In this document: in pieces, positions 756 to 62,706 of the stretch
Layout of the letters: every line of letters starts with the position of its first letter
How positions within the stretch are numbered: the first letter of the stretch is position 1
Assembly: GCA_038087875.1 (NCBI GenBank)
Contig: CM075977.1
Coordinates: forward strand, 300,018,001-300,082,000
Origin: Malacoraja senta
Taxonomy: Eukaryota
DNA length: 64,000 bases
Reading direction: 5' to 3'
Position numbers and translations under genes: made by a program
The notes under the pieces: model-generated
Told to the model about the DNA's origin: nothing
The model's input: the letters and a program-made list of their open reading frames with translations, nothing else
Database searches by the model: none

Positions 756-1236
756 CTAGACTGTGGGACCCGTTGGGGGAGGGGGGGTTGTGGGGGAGGG
801 GGAGGGTGGGTGGGGGAGGGGGGGTGAAGTGGGGGGAAGGGGGGTGGTCGCAGCAGGCGCACCCCGCACCTTCAGCTTTCGGCCTCACGCAGTAGCTCCC
901 GGTCCCACTCCGACTTCACTCAGAGGCTTCCGATTCAACTTAACACTCAGCCCCGCCGCCGGGGTTTTATTCCCCGCGGGTGCCGGAAGGGGCGTTACCT
1001 TCATGGTGACAGACAGGCGAGAAGACCAATCTGCTGATCTCACGATGTTTTAAACCTTCATAACTTTTCAAATATTTCACCGATCGGAACAAAACTTGGT
1101 GCGCTTGGAGCAGAGGTGAATGGTGAGTAAGGTGGCGAAAAAATCTGAGCGATATATGTTACCATTTTTGCGCAAATTAAAAAAACCGCAAACCGGAAGT
1201 GGTCAAGATGAGAGATTTAGTAATAGTATAGATAGA
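756..1236 (-). mobile_element. Non-autonomous Helitron, copy 1
   Basis: The minus strand begins (A)TCTATCTATACTA.. and ends ..CCAACGGGTCCCACAGTCTAG|T, giving TC...CTAG termini at an A|T site with a degenerate 3' hairpin. About 230 bp of its 5' region is shared with the element at 61125-62533. Confidence 0.75.
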
Positions 1237-5133: not shown

Positions 5134-6711
5134 CAGTGCATTCTGAAAGTATTCAGATCTCTTCACTTTTTCCACATTTTTGTTACGTTACAGCCTTTTT
5201 CTAAAATGGATTAAATTATTTTCTTTTATTATCAATCTACTCACAATACCCCATAATCAAAAAGCGGAAATAGGTGTTTAGAAATGTTTGCAAAATAATT
5301 TTTTTGTTTTTAACTGAAATTTCATATTTACATAAGTATTCAGACCCTTTACTCAGTACTTTGTTGAGGCACCTTTGGCAGCGATTACAGCTTCAAGTCT
5401 TCTTGGGTATGACACTACAAACTTGGCACACCTGTATTTGGGTAATTTCTCCCATTCCTCTCTGCAGATCCTCTCAAACTCTTGTCAGCCATTTTCAGGT
5501 CCCTCCAGAGATGTTCGATCGTGTTCGAGTCCAGGCTCTGGCTGGGCCACTCAAGCACATTCACAGACATGTCATAAAGCCACTCCTGCGTTGTCTTGGC
5601 TGTGTGCTTAGGTTCGTTGTCCTGTTGGAAGGTGAACCTCCGCCCCATTCTGAGGTCCTGAACGCTCTGGAGCAGGTTTTCATTAAGGATCTCTCTGTAC
5701 TTTGCTCCGTTCATCTTTCCCTCGATCCTAACTAGTCTCCCAGTTCCTGCCGCTGAAAAACATCCCCACATCATGATGCTGCCACCACCATGCTTCACCA
5801 TAGGTATGGTATTGGCCAGGTGATGAGCGGTGCCTGGTTTCCTCCAGACGTGACGCTTGACATTCAGGCCAAAGAGTTCAATCTTGGTTTCATCAGACCA
5901 GAGAATCTTGTTCAAGGTGCCTTTTGGCAAACCCCAAACAGGATGTCATGTGACTTTTACTGAGGAGTGGCTTCCGTCTGGCCACTCTACCGTAAAGGCC
6001 TGATTAGTGGAAAGCTGCAGATATAGTTGTCCTTCTGGAAGGTTCTCCCATCTCCACAGATGAACTCTGGAGCTCTATCAGAGTGACCATTGGGCTCTTG
6101 GTCACCTTCCTGACCAAGGCCCTTCTCCCCAGATTGCTCAGTTTGGCCGGGCGGCCAGCTCTATGAAGAGTCCTGGTGGTTCCAAAGTTCTTCCATTTAA
6201 GAATGAGGGAGGCCACTGTGATCTTCGGGACCTGCAATGCTGCAGAAATTGTTTTATACCCTTCCCCAGATCTGTGTCTCGACACAATCCTGTCTCGAAG
6301 GTCTACGGACAATTCCTTCATCTTTGTGGCTTGGTTTTTGCTCTGACATCCTTATATAGACAGGTGTGTGCCTTTCCAAATCATGTACAATCAATTTAAT
6401 TTACCACTGGTGGACTCCAATCAAGTTGTAGAAACATCTCAAGGATAATCAATGGAAACAGGATGCACCTATGCTCAATTTTGAGTGTCATAGCAAAGGG
6501 TCTGAATACTTATGTAAATGTGATATTTCAGTTATTTATTTTTAATTACTTTGCAAAAATTTCTGAACACCTGTTTTTACGCTTTTTTATTATGGGGTAT
6601 TGTGTGTAGATTGATGATCAAAAAAATGAATTTAATCCATTTTAGAATAAGTCTGTAACGTTACAAAATGTGGAAAAAGTAAAGAGGTCTGAATACTTTC
6701 TGAATGCACTG
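5134..6711 (-). mobile_element. Tc1-family DNA transposon (IR/DR-type long TIRs) with a decayed transposase
   Basis: TA|CAGTGCATTCTGAAAGTATTCAGA ... TCTGAATACTTTCTGAATGCACTG|TA, with inner direct repeats aagtattcagaccc. Minus ORFs 6004-6321 (paired/HTH, GRPAKL) and 5415-5930 ([24 protein letters not shown]) are interrupted by stops and deletions. Confidence 0.95.
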
Positions 6712-12249: not shown

Positions 12250-13752
12250 CAGTGTTTGGGACAAAGACCTATCATTTATTTATTTGCCTCTGTACTCCAC
12301 AATTTGAGATTTGTAATAGAAAAAAATCCCGTGGTTAAAGAGCACATTGTCAGATTTTAATACATTTTTATCCATTTTGGTTTCACCACGTAGATATTAT
12401 AGCTGTGTTTATACATAGTCCCCCCATTTCAGGGCACCATAATGTTTGTGACACATGGCTTCACATGCATTTGTAATTGCTCAGGGTGTTTAAATGCCTC
12501 CTTAATGCAGGTATAAGGGAGCTCTCAGCACTTATTCTTTCCTCCAGTCTTTCCATCACCTTTGGGAACTTTTATTGCTGTTTATCAACATGAGGACCAA
12601 AGTTGTGCCAGTGAAAGTCAATGAAGCCAGTATGAGACTGAGAAACACGAATAAAACTGTTAGAGATATCAGCCAAACCTTTGGCTTCCCAAAATGAACT
12701 GTTTGGAACATCATTAAGAAGAAAGAGAGCACTGGTGAGCTCACTAACCGCAAAGGGACTGGTAGGCCAAGTAAGACTTCCACAGCTGATGACAGAAGAA
12801 TTCTCCCTATAATAAATAAAAATCCCCGAACATTTTTCCGACAGATCAGAAACACTTTTCAGGAGTCAGGTGTGGATTTGTCAATGACCACTGTCTGCAG
12901 AAGACTTCATGAACAGAAATACAGAGACTACACTGCAAGAAACAAACCACTGGTTAACTGCAAAAATAGGATGGCCAGGTTACAGTTACCAAGAAGTACT
13001 TAAAAGAGCAACCACAGTTCTTGAAAAAGGTCTTGTGGACAGATGAGACGCAGATTAACTTATATCAGAGTGATGGCAATAGCAAAGTATGGAGAAGAGA
13101 AGGAACTGCCCAAGATCCAAGGCAGACCAACTCATCTGTGAAACACGATGGTGGGGGTGTTATGGCCTGGGCATGTATGGCTGAAGGTACTGACTCACTT
13201 ATCTTCATTGATTGTATAACTGCTGATGGTAGTAGCAAAATGAATTCTGAAGTGTATAGACACATCCTATCTGCTCAAGCTCAAACAAATGCCTCAAAAC
13301 TCATTGGCCGGCGGTTCATTCTACAGCAAGACAATGATCCCAAACATACTGCTAAAGCAACAAAGGAGTTTTTCAAAGCTAAAAAATGGTCAATTCTTGA
13401 GTGGCCAAGTCAATCACCTGATCGGAAGCCAATTGAGCATGCCTTTTACATGCTGAAGAGAATACTGAAGGGGACTAGCCCCCAAAACAAGCATAAGCTA
13501 AAGATGGCTGCAATACAGGCCTGGCAGAGCATCACCAGAGAAGACACCCAGCAACTGGTGATGTCCATGAATCTTCAAGCAGTCATTACATGCAAAGGAT
13601 ATGCAACAACATATGCATGACTACTTTCATTTACATGACATTGCTGTGTCCCAAACATTATGTTTGCTGTGTCCCAAACATTATGGTGCCCTGAAATGGG
13701 GGGACTATGTATAGACACTGCTGTAGTTTCTACATGGTGAAACCAAAATGTA
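12250..13752 (+). mobile_element. Tc1-family transposon, decayed, right end truncated; same family as 30538-32223
   Basis: TA|CAGTG start inside a CR1, ATG at 12590. ORF 13021-13620 has WTDETQ, QQDNDPKH and WPSQSPD..IEH; stop and frameshift upstream; inner repeats cataatgtttg.gacac. Confidence 0.92.
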
Positions 13753-30537: not shown

Positions 30538-32223
30538 CAGTGCCCTCCATAATGTTTGGGACATTTATTTATTTTCCTCTGTACACCACATAAGCATATA
30601 AAAGGCATGCTCAATTGGGTTCAGATCAGGTGATTGACCTGGCCACTCAAGAATTGACAATTTATTTGCTTTGAAAAACTCCTTTGTTGCTTTAGCAGTA
30701 CGTTTGGGATCATTGTCTTGCTGTAGAATGAACCACCGGCCAATGAGTTTTGATGCATTTGTGTGAACTTGAGCAGATAGGATGTGTCTATACACTTCAG
30801 AATTCATTATGCTACTACTATCAGCAGTTGTATCATCAATGAAGATAAGTGAGACAGTACCTTCAGCAGCCATACATGCCAGGCCATAACATCCCCACGA
30901 CCGTGTTTCACAGATGAGGTGGTATGCTTTGGATCTTGGGCCGTTCCTTCTCTCGTCCATACTTTGTTCTTGCCATCACTCTGATATGTTAACCTTCGTC
31001 TCATCTGTCCACAAACCCTTTTTCCAGAAATATGGTTGCTCTTTTAAGTACTTCTTGGCGAACTGTAACCTGGCCATCCTATTTTTGCGGCTAACCAGTG
31101 GTTTGCATCTTGCATTGTAACCTCTGTATTTCTGTTCATGAAGTCTTCTGTGGACATTGGTCATTGACAAATCCACACCTGACTCCTGAAGAGTTATTCT
31201 GATCTGTTGGACAGGTGTTTGGGGATTTTTCTTTATTATAAAGTGAATTCTTCTGTCATCAGCTGTGGAGATCTTCCTTGGCCTGCCAGTCCCTTTGTGA
31301 TTAATAAGCTCACCAGTGCTCTCTTTCTTCTTAATGATGTTCCAAACAGTTCTTTTTGGGAACCCTAAGGTATGGCTGATGTCTCTAACAGTTTTATTCT
31401 TGTTTCTCAGTCTCATAATGGCTTCATTGACTTTCATTGAGTTTAGAAGGATGAGGGGGATATCTTATAGAAACATATAAAATTATAAAAGGACTGGACA
31501 AGCTAGAAGCAGATAAAAGGTTCCCAATGTTGAGCGAGTCCAGAACCAGGGGCCTCAGTCTTAGAATAAAGGGGAAGCCATTTAAGACTGAGGTGAGAAA
31601 AAACGTTTTCATCCAGAGAGTTGTGAATTTGTGGAATTCCCTGCCACAGAGGGCAGTGGAGGGCAAGTCACTGGATGGATTTAAGAGAGAGTTAGATAGA
31701 GCTCTAGGGGCTAGTGGAATCAAGGGATATGGGGAGAGGCAGGCACGGGTTATTGATTGGGGACGATCAGCCATGATCACAATGAATGGCGGTGCTGGCT
31801 TAAGGGCCGAATGGCCTCCTCCTGCAGCTATTTTCTATGTTTCTATGTAACTTTGGTCCTCATGTTGATAAACAGCAATAACAGTTTCCAAAGGTGGTGG
31901 AAAGAGTGGAGGAAAGACTAAGTGCTGAGAGCTCTCTTATACCTGCATTAAGGAGGCATTTAAACACCCTGAACAATTACAAACATATGTGAAGCCATGT
32001 GTCCCAAACATTATGGTGCCCTGAAATGGGGGGACTGTGTATAAACACAACTGTAATTTCTACATGGTGAAACCAACATGGATAAAAATGGCCTTTAAAT
32101 AAAATCTGTCAATGTGCACTTTAACCACGTGCAATGTTTTTCTATTACAAATCTCAAATTGTAGAGTACAGAGGCAAATAAATTAATGATGGCTCTTTGT
32201 TCCAAACATTATGGAGGACACTA
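30538..32223 (-). mobile_element. Tc1-family transposon with an internal deletion and a nested CR1
   Basis: TA|CAGTGCCCTCCATAATGTTTGGGACA ... TTCCAAACATTATGGAGGACACT. Minus ORFs 30976-31437 (TGRPRK, WTDETK) and 30565-30960 (QQDNDPK, WPGQSPDLNPIEH). Reverse complement of 12250-13752. Confidence 0.92.
31439..31848 (+). mobile_element. CR1 3' end inserted in the Tc1 transposase 5' region
   Basis: ORF 31527-31850 SRTRGLSLRIKG..QRVVNLWNSLP; ctatgtttctatgt tail. The Tc1 sequence resumes at 31849. Confidence 0.9.
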
Positions 32224-56130: not shown

Positions 56131-59100
56131 AACAGAGTAGGGGGAGATTAAAGATGTCTGGGAACACTTATGCTAGTTGGTCCGTGCAGTTCTTAAGGAT
56201 GCGGCCAGGAACTCCGTCTGGGCCAGTTGTGTTCCGTTGTTCACTCTGAGGAAGGCTGATCACACTTCTGCAACAGTGACTCTGGGAAAAGGCACATTCT
56301 TTTCAGTGGGACAGATGTCTTCGCCCAATTGGTCTTCTGCTCAGTGAAAGCATAGAATGCATTAATCAGGAAGAGTGCTGTATATCTATAGTTAAGATCC
56401 ACTCTGTCTCCAGGTTTAAAATCCCTTAGTAAGGATTTGGGGTACATTTAAAGTAATATCAGTAATATCAAACTCAAGATGGCATCATGTGTAATATCTC
56501 AATAAATGGTGGTCAATTTTCTCTTTAATGTTCTTTTGTATTTCATTTGCAAAACTGCATGTTAGTAAATCTACTAACTAGAGTAAATCAGGTTTTCTTC
56601 TGCCATGGATCATTATAAATACAGTAGATGTGATCGTGATTTTGCCCTTAGCATGGGGAAAACACTTGTTTGTCTCGTTGTTTTTCGAGCTCCCTAAAGC
56701 GAAAATTCCAATGATGTTGTACCAGCAGAACAGACTGTAATTTTCAAGTCAAGAGTGTTTTATTGTCATACGTCCCAGACGGGACAATGAAATTCTTACT
56801 TGCTGCAGCACAACAGAATATGTGAATATGTAAACATTGGATATAACGGGGGGGAAAAAGAAACAGTTCAATAAATAACAAATACAGTGCAAATAACAAA
56901 TAATAATATAGTCTTTTGCAGTTCAGAGCTCATAGCTTGTTCGTTGTGCATTTTTTGCTGCATATCAGTAGTTAAGATCCAATCTGATTCCAGATTTATA
57001 ATGCAACTGTCTAATGAGCGTGTATGTATGTTAGATGTCAGATGATTTCACCAGTGAATTAGGGAAAGCTATTTTCCAACAACACTTTGTGATAATAAAA
57101 CTTGAGTTGCTGAATTTCAGTGCCACAACATAATTAAAAACAACCAGTTAAGCCATTTAATCTGCACTTTGAGCAGAAAGTTAACCTATATCTCTGACAT
57201 TTGAATACTGCTTATTAGATTTAAAACTTCGAGAACTACTGGTTACAAAGAAATTCAAACAAATCAGGAGATATACACAACACCTAATGAAACATGAGTT
57301 GATAGGAGAGCAGTAAAGTACAAGAGCGGAAGTATTGCAGAAAGCACTGGTGGGAGGTTTAGAACAAGAAGCATTCAATGACTTTAGAGGCCCACTAATA
57401 GAATGTGGGTTATAGTAGGTCAGACACTGGAAGTCAAGTCTGGGCCATGAATGTAAACTATTCCATCTGTGTCTATGTCTAAACATTCTCTCAAAGGAGA
57501 TGACTTTTTTCTTCAAAAGCAAAGAAAACAAACTGTGGTTTGAGGCCATGTGTTATTGCACTGCAAAATTAACTGTTAACAGATATTGATAAGCATGTGT
57601 AGCATAGTAGGGTTTGTTAAGAAGCTATAATTCTGGATGATGAAACCAGGAAGCTGTGAGGATTGTGGCTGTTAAACAAATTAATGTGTCTGCTAACAAC
57701 CACAGCAGAAGCCGAGAGATATCCGAGGGAGTAGTCATGACATTCCAAGTGTAGCATCTAGTCACGCACATTTATTTTAATGTGATTGCAATTGACAAAA
57801 AAAATTCTGAATATCCAAACACATTTTATGAATTAATTATGATTACCTGAAATGATGATAGGTTAGTGATTATCAGAATTCTTATATATATATATAACAC
57901 AGGGATATCTTCTACTGCTGTGAGATTGCCAATTATCTGTGCTCTGGACTATACTATTTCTTCCAGGTGGGTCCAGGATAGAGTCTTCTAATGCGAGTCT
58001 ATCTCCTAATATGTCAACAGTTCTATAAGTTGAGCAGAACTTGCTCCAACACAAGTAGCTCATTCTGTTTTGACTGCTGGCAAGGCTCCTTCCCACAGTC
58101 CCCAGCTTATCTTCTGTCAATTTTAATTTGAAGGTATTTGATCATCACTAACATTTAGAATCAGCCAAGACCAAACAAAAATGTAAAAATCAATTAAAAA
58201 TTTGTATCAAAACGTTAATGTAGTAAAAAAGCATGTGCCATAAAAAGTAATTTTAGCATATAAACTTACTTAAATAAATCAAATAGAAACTTGCCTTTCT
58301 CTTGGCAACTGACTTATCTCATTGATTTCAGTGGACTCAGGGAGCAATTCCCTAATTAGTAGAAGGCTGCACTGTCATGTGCTATGTGATTGCCAAGTCA
58401 AGCGTATATCAGCTAGCAATTCTGCTGCAAATCTTGGCAGCAAATGTGTTCTTATATAGAAATAAAAAGCAAGCAATCTGAAAATAATTGATAATTATGC
58501 ATCATTTCAGTTAAGAGTTTTGTAAAACTTATTATCACCAGAATCAGTGGTGAGGCTTCTTAAAGATAAACAAAGACTGGAAAGTGAATGTCTGTGCACG
58601 CCATGAATATCATTAACTTCGTTGGGCATTAAATTCACTACAGTTTATGCCAGGTTGACCAATGAGTTGAAGTTCCACTTAACAATTTTATAAGGATACT
58701 GGGAAGTTGCTTTAAATTTCCTGACTTTACATCGCAGAGATTATGAAGAAGCAGAGTAGTTTATCTGACTTATTTTTACATGCTTTGATTTCTGTGAATA
58801 TTCCACACAACTAAATTCCTTGTGTTTATTTGCAAAATATGCAGTGGTCTGCATTTTTTTGGGAGGGGGAGTAATTTGTGGTTTGTTATTCTCTACGTAA
58901 CCATATAAAATGAATAGGAAATGTTATCCAGGCTCTGGCACCTAACCTATTCAAGAAGTGGAAAATCACTTCCTATCAGCACAAATATTCAGTGTCAAAT
59001 TTTCACTATTCTTATATCCATGCTCTCCATATGATTCCTCAGAATTTATATCCTTCACAAAATGTTTAAAAAATCACATTTGAAATGTTGTTCCTTTATT

Positions 59101-59719
59101 ATAGTAATTATATATGCCATTTATTAATTTGATTACATTCAGTTATTTTTCAAATGAATAAATGGATGTGCATTTGTTCCCAACATCAAGATGGGGGTGA
59201 AGGATGGTTAATGGGATATCTGCTCTCTATTTTACTTGAAGCTTATTAATTTTATATTCTTGTCTTTTACACATTTTGGACATTTTAGAAATCTTACCTC
59301 CTATTTAATTTCCCAGTAATAATCTTTCATTCTGTAAGTCTCCTTTATCGATCCTTAAAGTCCTGGAATTGACCTCAATGTTCTATATAAATACCCCAAT
59401 TACAATTATGTCTTTTTGAAGTACCCAAGTTTCTAAAGACATTTTTGTATTTGCATGTACATTACCCATTCTCCATGTATGCCTAGTATAAAGCATTTCA
59501 TCTTATTAAATGCACTGATGTGCAGCTCGATATTTAATTAGTATGCTAGCTTTCCTGATAATGGTTTCAAATTGATTGGTAGCTTTATGCATCTAATAAT
59601 ATCATCCTGATTTTATTATTTTCCTTGCTAGTTTTTTTTTAATTTTCTAATGCTTATTAATTTATATATATTAAAAAATCTGCCAGTTGAACTAGATATA
59701 TTTAGATGGTATAATTTTA

Positions 59720-60690
59720 TGATAAGTTCATAAGATATAGGATAAGAATTAGGCCATTCGGTCCATCAAGTCTACTCTGCCATTCAATAATGGCTGATCT
59801 ATCTTTCTCTCCTAACCCCATTCTCCTGCCTTCTTCCCATAACCTCTGACGCCCATACTAATCAAGAATCTGTCTATCTCTGTCTTAAATATATCCCCTG
59901 ACTTTGCCTTCTGTGGCAAAGAATTCCACAGATTCACCACCCTCTGACTAAAGAAGTTCCTCCTCATCTCCTTCAAAAAAGAACGTCCTTTAATGTCCTA
60001 GACTCCCACTAGTGGAAACATCCTCTCCACATCCACTCTATCCATGCCTTTCACCATTCTGTACGTTTCAATGAGGTCCCCCCTCATTCATCTAAACTCC
60101 AGCGAGTACAGGCCCAGTGCTGCTAAATATTCATATGTTAACCTCTTCATTCCTGGGATCATTCTTTTAAACCTCCTGTGGAGCCTCTCCAGAGTCAGCA
60201 CATCCTGCCTTAGATATGGTGCCCAATATTGCACACACTATTCTAAATGCGGCCTGACCAGCACCTATAGTCCCTCAGCATTACATCCCTGTTTTTTATA
60301 TACAAGCCCTTTCGAAATAAATGCTAGCATTGTGTTTGCTTTCTTTACTACCGATTCGACTTGCAGATTAACTTTTGGGGAATTCTACACCAGCACTCTC
60401 AAGTCCCTTTGGATCTCCGATTTCTGGATTATCTCCCCATTTAGTAAATAATCAACGACTTTATTCCTACTACCAAAATGCATGACTCCACATTTTGCGA
60501 CACTATATTCCATCTGCCACTCTCCCAACCTATCCAAGTCCTTCTGCAGAGTCCCTACTTTCTCTATGCTACCTGCCCCTCCACCTATTTTCGTATCATC
60601 CTCAAACTTGGCCACAAATCCTTCAATCCCCTCATGGAAATCATTAATATACAACGTAAAAAGAGCAGCGCCCCCAGCACCACGCCCTGT
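59720..60690 (-). mobile_element. CR1 LINE 3' ~1 kb
   Basis: Minus ORF LFTLYINDFHEGIEGFVAKFEDDTKIGG..KCGVMHFG; 3' UTR and cataag tail. Confidence 0.9.
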
Positions 60691-61124
60691 GGAACTCCAA
60701 GGAACTGCAGGAACTACAAGGAACCAAAGATTGACACAAAGTGCTGGAGTAACTCGGTCAGGCAGCATCCCTGGAGAACATGGATAGGTGATGGTTTGGG
60801 TCGGAACCTTCATGTTTATCTTATCTAGATACACAGCTTAGGTTCATCAAAATTTATATTGTGATTAATGTAAACATGTATGTCTATCATATTTTGCCTT
60901 TATTTTAAAAACATTAGCTAAAGATTAGGTTTTTTTTAATGTCAAATGTAGTATTTTATCAAATAAAATTATGGATAATTTATATATTTTTGACTGTTCT
61001 GATTGAGTTGCACAAAGAATTTTAACAAATTTGTCAGATATGATCTACTCTTGATAATTGAAATGTTTTTTCTTTGTGGCTTCTTCAGAGAACATTTGTA
61101 AATATCTTGAATGTTAATCTCAAA

Positions 61125-62533
61125 CTAGACTAAGTGGGACCCGTTAGTCTGTTCCCCCAACGCAACCCGTTCCCCCAACACAATATTCCACCACGCTCGC
61201 CTATCCCCCTCCCATCAAATCCACCGCTCCCTGTCCCCCTCTCCCCCCCCCCTCTACCCCACCTTGTCCATCACCCCAGACCCCTTCTATCCACCTTCCT
61301 GCACTCCACCACCTCTCTACCCCACCCCCTCCCTCTCCCTCCCTCTCTCACCCCCTCCCGCATCCCACTCTCCCCTCTCCCTCCCTCCCTCCCTCATCTC
61401 TCTCTCTCCCCTCCCTCCCTCATCCCTCTCTCCCCCCTCCCTCCGTCTTCTCTCCCACCCTGTACTGTAGGCTGTGCTGTGGCGCTCCTTCTCTCCGTGT
61501 AACACTGCGTTAGGGCCACTCCCGGTGTCCGTGCCCACGGGCAGGAGCCGCTGGAGCGCTGCCCGTGCTGGGGCCCGTGGTGTCCCTCACCAGCGGGTAG
61601 ACAGCGGGGCTCGGCACTGCCCCCCGCTCCCCCCATCTCCCTCTACCACCCCATCTCCCTGATCCCCATTTCCCTCATCCTTCTCCCCTCACTCCCATTC
61701 CCTGCCCCAGCACCTACCCAGGTCGTAGAGCAGCGCTAGGGCCTGGAACACAGCCTGGTTCTCGTACTCGGCCCGGCCCTGACTGTAGGTGGCTGAAGCA
61801 CTCGCGGACGTGGGCCTCGACGGAGCCGGGCTCGCTGTGCCGGGGTCGGGGTGAGGGTGGCGAGCAGCCGAGCCAGAGCTGCCCGCAGAGCAGGAAGCGG
61901 AGGCTGTACTGCAGGATGGCGGCGGTCGGGCGCCCCCCGAGGCGCTGGGACACCTTGACCCAGGCCCCGGGTTTGGACACGACTCCAGCCCTCAGCTTGG
62001 CCACCGCCTCAGCTCCAGTCCAGGCCCCGACTTCATCTCCGGGCTCGTCCCTGACCCCGGACCCAGGATCATCCAGGCCCAGTCCCTGGGCTCGGCCTGC
62101 GGCACCACCCTCCCCACCAGGTACTACGCGGCGGCGGTGGCGGCACTCCTTCATGGCAACATCCAGCCGATTGACAGCGGATGTAGCCAATCAATGCGGC
62201 GATGGTGCCAGGAAGAGCATCGCCGTCCCTGACAGGAGAAGAGACCAATCTGCGTGGCGGCGACTGACAGCAATCTGCGCATGCGCGTTTTCTACGATTT
62301 TTAAACCTTAATAACTTTTACAATATACCATCGATCGGAACGAAACGTGTTGTATTCACAGCACAGGAGAACGGTGAGTAAGCTTGCGAAAAATAGTAGT
62401 GCTGTCGCGTACCGTTTTTGCGCAAATAGAAAAACCACACAAACCGGAAGAGCACAAGATCAGAGTTTTAGTGATGGATGGATGAAAATAGATTGATGAA
62501 GATAGATGGATGAAGATAGATAGATATAGATAG
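61125..62533 (-). mobile_element. Non-autonomous Helitron, copy 2, carrying GC-rich cargo
   Basis: The minus-strand 3' end is ..AACGGGTCCCACTTAGTCTAG|T. Its 5' region 62230-62472 is homologous to 1012-1222, and a (GATA/GATG)n microsatellite runs into the assembly gap. Confidence 0.75.
61718..62060 (-). pseudogene. Putative captured host exon fragment, gene unidentified
   Basis: GC3-rich reading PGAWVKVSQRLGGRPTAAILQYSLRFLLCGQLWLG..EPGSVEAHVRECFS, then after a 1-nt frameshift TYSQGRAEYENQAVFQALALLYDL(G), ending at a G|GTAGGT donor (61712-61717). Confidence 0.55.
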
Positions 62534-62706
62534 NNNNNNNNNNNNNNNNNNNNNNNNNNNNNNNNNNNNNNNNNNNNNNNNNNNNNNNNNNNNNNNNNNN
62601 NNNNNNNNNNNNNNNNNNNNNNNNNNNNNNNNNNNNNNNNNNNNNNNNNNNNNNNNNNNNNNNNNNNNNNNNNNNNNNNNNNNNNNNNNNNNNNNNNNNN
62701 NNNNNN
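62534..62706. other. Assembly gap (173 N)
   Basis: Run of N next to a (GATA)n microsatellite. Confidence 1.

Follow-up and report, generated by a model that had tools for sequence, protein, structure and literature searches.

The segment at 61125-62533 of the window (the whole stretch of 64,000 nucleotides that was analyzed) is very probably a fixed and decayed non-autonomous Helitron that carries part of exon 1 of the host gene SAC3D1, together with the splice donor of that exon and apparently the start of intron 1, all captured at the DNA level. Gene capture by Helitrons is well established in maize and bats, and the element is a further example of this well-known kind, for which the donor gene can now be named. 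The copy is old and dead, belongs to a skate Helitron that is very abundant, and by itself only adds to the number of dead examples; what makes it useful is that it is dated and well anchored, with a cargo specific to skates and an insertion present in at least three organisms. The features referred to below are as follows, with positions counted in the window.

61125-62533, minus strand: the larger element, cut by an N gap at 62534-62706 (a run of 173 N).
61125-61149, minus strand: putative Helitron 3' terminus, ending in TTAGTCTAG and followed by a flanking T (A at 61124 on the plus strand).
61150-61449, minus strand: filler of low complexity that is rich in G on the Helitron strand and shows (CCCT)n-like tandem arrays on the plus strand.
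61450-61717, minus strand: intron-like segment, starting with GTAGGTGC directly after the donor and presumably the start of SAC3D1 intron 1.
61718-62163, minus strand: SAC3D1 exon 1 fragment, corresponding to about residues 57-284 of the Rhinoraja protein (HMMER, tblastn and alignments).
62146-62293, minus strand: promoter-like leader, with three modules of the TGACAG..CCAATC type, the palindrome GCGCATGCGC and ATGAAGG (motifs named by eye).
62294-62475, minus strand: head, the conserved putative Helitron 5' region, common to the smaller copy (BLASTN and depth).
62473-62533, minus strand: 14-base tandem repeat in 4.4 copies, at the head and running up to the N gap.
756-1236, minus strand: smaller copy of the same family, sharing the 3' end (CTAG/T) and the head, with its putative 5' end at 1236/1237.
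5415-5930, 13021-13620 and 30565-31437: remnants of Tc1/mariner-type transposases, with the Pfam domains DDE_3 and HTH_Tnp_Tc3_2.

On the plus strand the larger element and the smaller copy begin alike (CTAGACT..GTGGGACCCGTT), and the terminal 12-mer that they share occurs in the 64-kb window only at 763 and 61134, with 0.19 occurrences expected by chance. The heads, at 1042-1224 and 62294-62475, are 76% identical over 184 bp by BLASTN, and the shared head region measures roughly 185-240 bp in all; the interiors differ, and BLASTN of 756-1236 against 61125-62533 found no similarity between them. Inside, the smaller copy is G/C-rich and has ATGAAG/GTAACG (the slash here and below marks a border) in place of the SAC3D1 piece, and the segment of the larger element reaches 65-73% G+C against a background of 23-40%. 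The earlier note had proposed two elements with Helitron-type ends, a common 5' region of about 230 bp and unlike interiors, and the shared 12-mer and the alignment of the heads bear this out. The filler of the larger element is marked by a GC skew of -0.7 to -0.9 in 61150-61449 and by tandem arrays at 61312-61461. A low-complexity tract adjoins the 3' terminus in both copies, G-rich on the plus strand at 775-845 and C-rich at 61150-61449, the elements lying in the same orientation.

Helitrons are defined by 5'-TC/CTRR-3' ends, insertion into an A/T target, and the lack of both target duplication and inverted repeats (PMC4778049). The minus strand of both copies ends in GTCTAG followed by T, which is a CTRR 3' terminus. 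The opposite end is less accessible: the head of the larger copy enters the N gap at 62534, where its TC 5' terminus is hidden, and in the smaller copy A/TCTATC can be read in Helitron orientation at either 1236/1237 or 1252/1253, which is a reading and not a proof and which no other copy within the window fixes. No target-site duplication is visible at the smaller copy, where the A on the head side is presumed only, and no inverted pair links the ends of either copy. The 3' stem of the larger copy consists of 7 bp (AGACTAA/TTAGTCT) overlapping the CTAG and is weak, with -3.4 kcal/mol, a z of -1.1 and 29 of 200 shuffles doing equally well; a search for a 3' hairpin in the smaller copy (756-1236) found none. 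A 3' palindrome is not strictly required by Helraiser (PMC4778049). The 64-kb window holds no RepHel, judging by the list of open reading frames and by Pfam, which gave only Tc1-type DDE and HTH domains. Together the features of 61125-62533 fit a non-autonomous Helitron, and we infer the Helitron mechanism from the features of the ends alone. A SINE or other RNA-derived origin was dropped, since neither a tRNA-like part nor an Rfam family was found above chance in the elements.

It is conceivable that the segment is instead some other mobile or composite repeat, for example a plus-strand retroposon with a (GATA)-like tail that carries the SAC3D1 piece by chance, but we hold this to be decidedly unlikely. 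The plus strand of the element does end in GATA-like tandem repeats, and a hairpin no better than many shuffles and a 5' TC that is out of sight leave room for such a reading; yet it is opposed by the CTAG/T found in both copies, by their unrelated interiors, and by the absence of terminal inverted repeats and of a tRNA or other RNA family. It is opposed as well by the abundance of the parts, for which public contigs of four organisms were aligned to 59000-62533, with 61150-61449 skipped as repeat and with depth taken as a sum over contigs, not as copy number. Summed in this way, depth is about 12-50 in the unique flanks, about 20,000-200,000 in the tail (61124-61241) and the head (62304-62533), and about 600-60,000 in the interior. 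At 61124 the sum rises from about 120 to about 167,000, a step of more than a thousand-fold, and joints to this position occur in the runs of all four organisms; across 62294-62475 it stands at about 150,000-175,000 against about 20 in the flanks. Relative to the flanks of the four organisms, depth is thus raised about 8,000-fold at the ends and 270-3,000-fold over the cargo, again as contig sums rather than copy numbers. Ends that are about equally and extremely abundant, around a middle that is far rarer and variable, are what a family of constant termini and exchangeable cargo would produce, whereas 5'-truncated retroposons show the reverse pattern. To the left of the element, 59708-60887 is made of extremely abundant repeats of its own, where summed depth reaches as much as 8-13 million, compared with about 20 in the unique flank, and a minus-strand open reading frame at 60385-60834 is LINE-like by eye and has no Pfam match.

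The cargo of this putative Helitron was identified by protein comparison. HMMER, run against 1.84 billion proteins, returned three matches, of which the best is P0001, a "SAC3 domain-containing protein 1-like" protein of Rhinoraja longicauda (E 4.6e-23), and the second is SAC3D1 of Mobula birostris; these SAC3D1 matches from Rhinoraja and Mobula carry the Pfam domain SAC3_GANP at 1e-59 to 1e-69. By tblastn (E 3e-30), residues 199-257 correspond to 61956-61786 in one minus-strand frame and residues 261-284 to 61787-61716 in the next, the latter stretch with 23 of its 24 residues identical, and a weaker collinear match extends back to about residue 57 near 62163. The minus-strand coding segment from which the earlier note had quoted peptides is therefore present, in two frames that meet near 61787-61790, and the protein match for the cargo at 61718-62163 names SAC3D1, of the SAC3/GANP family, as the donor gene that the earlier note had been unable to name. 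Several other searches with the fragment were silent: Pfam returned nothing in either frame or for the plus-strand open reading frame, even at E 10, a PDB sequence search returned nothing, the ESM Atlas held no usable match, and a word-based protein search was likewise empty, an expected outcome given that its candidates were limited to cluster representatives of 87-276 aa. The open reading frame was also considered as Myb/SANT, of which there was a weak echo in P0003, and this reading was dropped, as SAC3D1 matches far more strongly and in collinear order.

Comparison of the cargo with SAC3D1 of ten cartilaginous fishes also indicates the lineage of the donor. Two traits of the cargo, the repeat region EPGDEVGAW and the two additional residues of YSQGR(AE)YENQ, are found only in skate SAC3D1, being absent from rays, sawfish and sharks; the donor was therefore the gene of a skate, at a time when the skates had already separated from rays and sawfishes. 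The annotations of Amblyraja, Leucoraja and Rhinoraja each contain a full SAC3D1 gene.

The coding match stops at 61718, at G/GTAGGT, where the next minus-strand letters are GTAGGTGC and then G-rich sequence, and tblastn gave no coding match past 61716. Three independent bamboo-shark gene models place the border of exon 1 and intron 1 at this same G/GTAGGT and indicate that the putative donor at 61718 is the own donor of SAC3D1 exon 1. At this point the partial protein P0028 ends in ..YNL and P0025 starts with GSVK.., and the truncated bamboo-shark model P0029 reads through as ..YNLGRCSSLN, with the same G-R-C as the G/GTAGGTGC of the cargo. The exact end at G/GTAGGT and the intron-like G-rich sequence behind it, both described in the earlier note, can be read in the minus-strand letters, and its proposal of a captured host exon with a splice donor holds in that the SAC3D1 cargo ends at the exon 1 donor of the shark gene models. 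A simple model of exon 1 followed by exon 2 does not account for isoform X2 of Mobula (P0002), which lacks 43 residues with a junction 10 codons past this border. The segment at 61450-61717 is likely to come from SAC3D1 intron 1, on the basis of its first 8 bases and of its amplification together with the exon. In the four organisms many contigs, 83-90% identical, continue without a break from about 61483-61690 into the exon, so the exon end and the sequence that follows it were amplified as one unit.

This border also bears on whether the fragment could be a processed retrocopy of SAC3D1 made by a LINE, or a pseudogene left by segmental duplication, that happens to lie between two unrelated repeats. 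In favor are the degeneracy of the fragment, which has both a deletion and a frameshift, and the LINE-like and Tc1-like debris that surrounds it. Against these origins stand a match that stops at the exon 1 donor with the later exons absent, the retention of the donor and of intron-like sequence, the absence of poly(A), and a fragment that is multi-copy in four organisms and that begins right after an ATGAAGG also present in the smaller copy; we therefore regard them as very unlikely. Capture by a Helitron at the DNA level remains the reading that we prefer.

A skate-lineage member of the family would have acquired a stretch of SAC3D1 that started within exon 1, at about residue 57, and crossed the donor into intron 1, and the captured piece would have come to lie between a promoter-like head and a short CTAG tail. 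The route of capture may have been joint mobilization, starting at one element's head and ending at the tail of a neighboring one, or repair-mediated filler. Copies would then have spread by rolling-circle ("peel and paste") transposition, supplied in trans by the RepHel of an autonomous Helitron.

The present copy has since decayed. Its SAC3D1 fragment lacks the first 56 or so residues, and protein alignment reveals an in-frame deletion of 14-16 residues near 61957, which removes the nearly invariant DRLRSVRQD motif, and further suggests an 11-base deletion at about 61787-61790, with which the frame shifts 70 bases before the donor. Judged by its letters, the copy cannot encode a SAC3-domain or SAC3D1-like protein, and most likely it does nothing. 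Some contigs in all four organisms join 61787/61788 directly to 61981 or 62012, so that other members of the family lack 193-223 bases of the exon piece, and one edge of this deletion is the point at which the frame of the present copy shifts.

With respect to age, contigs of two of the organisms, B and C, span 60775-61175, which takes in the flank and the element's first 50 bases, and differ there by about 5%, and the unique flank at 59024-59773 shows the same divergence of about 5% in B and C. The same site is thus occupied in both, and the insertion is accordingly old, having been in place before at least three organisms diverged. No empty orthologous site was found, the site being occupied in organisms B and C; for the smaller copy, a paralogous empty site was sought in the window, which holds no other copy of its right flank.

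The nearest counterpart is HelibatN3 of vespertilionid bats, which captured the NUBPL promoter, six codons and a splice donor (PMC4778049), and exon trapping has been shown both in bats and in HeLa assays (PMC4778049). Like the skate element, HelibatN3 is non-autonomous, has ends of the 5'-TC/CTAG-3' type (the TC end of the skate element being unseen) and exists in very many copies, and it too carries the beginning of a host gene up to and including a splice donor, with the coding piece preceded by a promoter-like leader. The skate element differs in its donor gene, SAC3D1, in its skate hosts, and in carrying about 220 codons of exon 1 without the start codon; of its two copies, moreover, one has a weak 3' palindrome and the other none, and no chimeric transcript of it was seen. 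The gene-fragment Helitrons of maize and rice (PMC2575219) resemble it in their short conserved termini around interiors that vary between copies, in the capture of exon plus intron at the DNA level, and in the decay of what was captured as pseudo-exons, but they often hold pieces of several genes, whereas the skate element holds one gene piece and low-complexity filler. The literature that was searched holds no account of Helitron gene capture, or of Helitrons in detail, in skates or other cartilaginous fishes. By distributing CpG-rich, promoter-like leaders, and host exons whose donors look functional, to thousands of sites, such a family could influence gene regulation and the range of transcripts in a vertebrate lineage that evolves slowly.

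The leader itself is in part a property of the family. ATGAAGG is common to the smaller copy, where GTAACG follows it; in the larger copy it lies just upstream of the SAC3D1 fragment and in frame with it, and the ATG falls inside an open reading frame of 158 aa. On the plus strand, CCTTCATGG is common to the leaders of both elements. The CpG observed/expected ratio of the leader (62146-62293) is 1.18. Over wider stretches the ratio is 0.7-1.6 in 62164-62470 and 1011-1225, compared with 0-0.15 in the flanks at 59000-59700 and 60888-61124 and 0.43 in the window, and this high CpG has been kept although the larger insertion is common to organisms about 5% apart. The high CpG of both copies may reflect an unmethylated state like that of a CpG island, or simply masters that were CpG-rich.

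Given such a leader, the segment might be taken for a functioning first exon driven by a promoter of its own, either the start of a real gene or an exonized Helitron that feeds a transcript. A CpG-rich (ratio 1.2-1.6) and CCAAT-rich leader, an in-frame ATG and a usable donor speak for this, as does P0018, in which a Helitron-type 5' part is joined to normal SAC3D1 exons. The break in the frame 70 bases before the donor speaks against it, no RNA run containing the stretch of the element was found, and P0018 may be an assembly chimera, so that we consider a live exon extremely unlikely and continue to read this copy as a dead Helitron.

P0018 is a 252-aa protein encoded on a public Logan contig of 1029 bases, and was compared with 61786-61975 on the minus strand. 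Its first 25 or so residues show the derived deletion of the Helitron cargo, the wording KPGxWVK, and R-to-C and R-to-H changes of the kind that CpG decay produces, and the remainder is normal, fully spliced Leucoraja SAC3D1 down to the stop. P0018 can be read as a chimeric message or as a chimera of the assembly. P0018 gives a hint that the SAC3D1-carrying Helitron subfamily could act as a portable first exon, with leader, in-frame ATG and captured donor spliced into host messages. We think this improbable; if true, it would amount to true exon shuffling in cartilaginous fish.

Several smaller motifs were also noted in the leader and head. At 62170-62290 on the plus strand there are three TGACAG..(C)CAATC modules together with GCGCATGCGC, and the smaller copy has one such module at 1010-1040. 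Within the leader, CGATTGACAG matches nine of the ten positions of a PBX-MEIS decamer, as read by eye. Finally, both heads contain GGTGAGTAAG, a near-consensus splice donor on the plus strand (62371-62380 and 1124-1133) and hence on the strand opposite to that of the Helitron and SAC3D1; as it lies downstream of the CCAAT-rich part, the leader looks two-directional.
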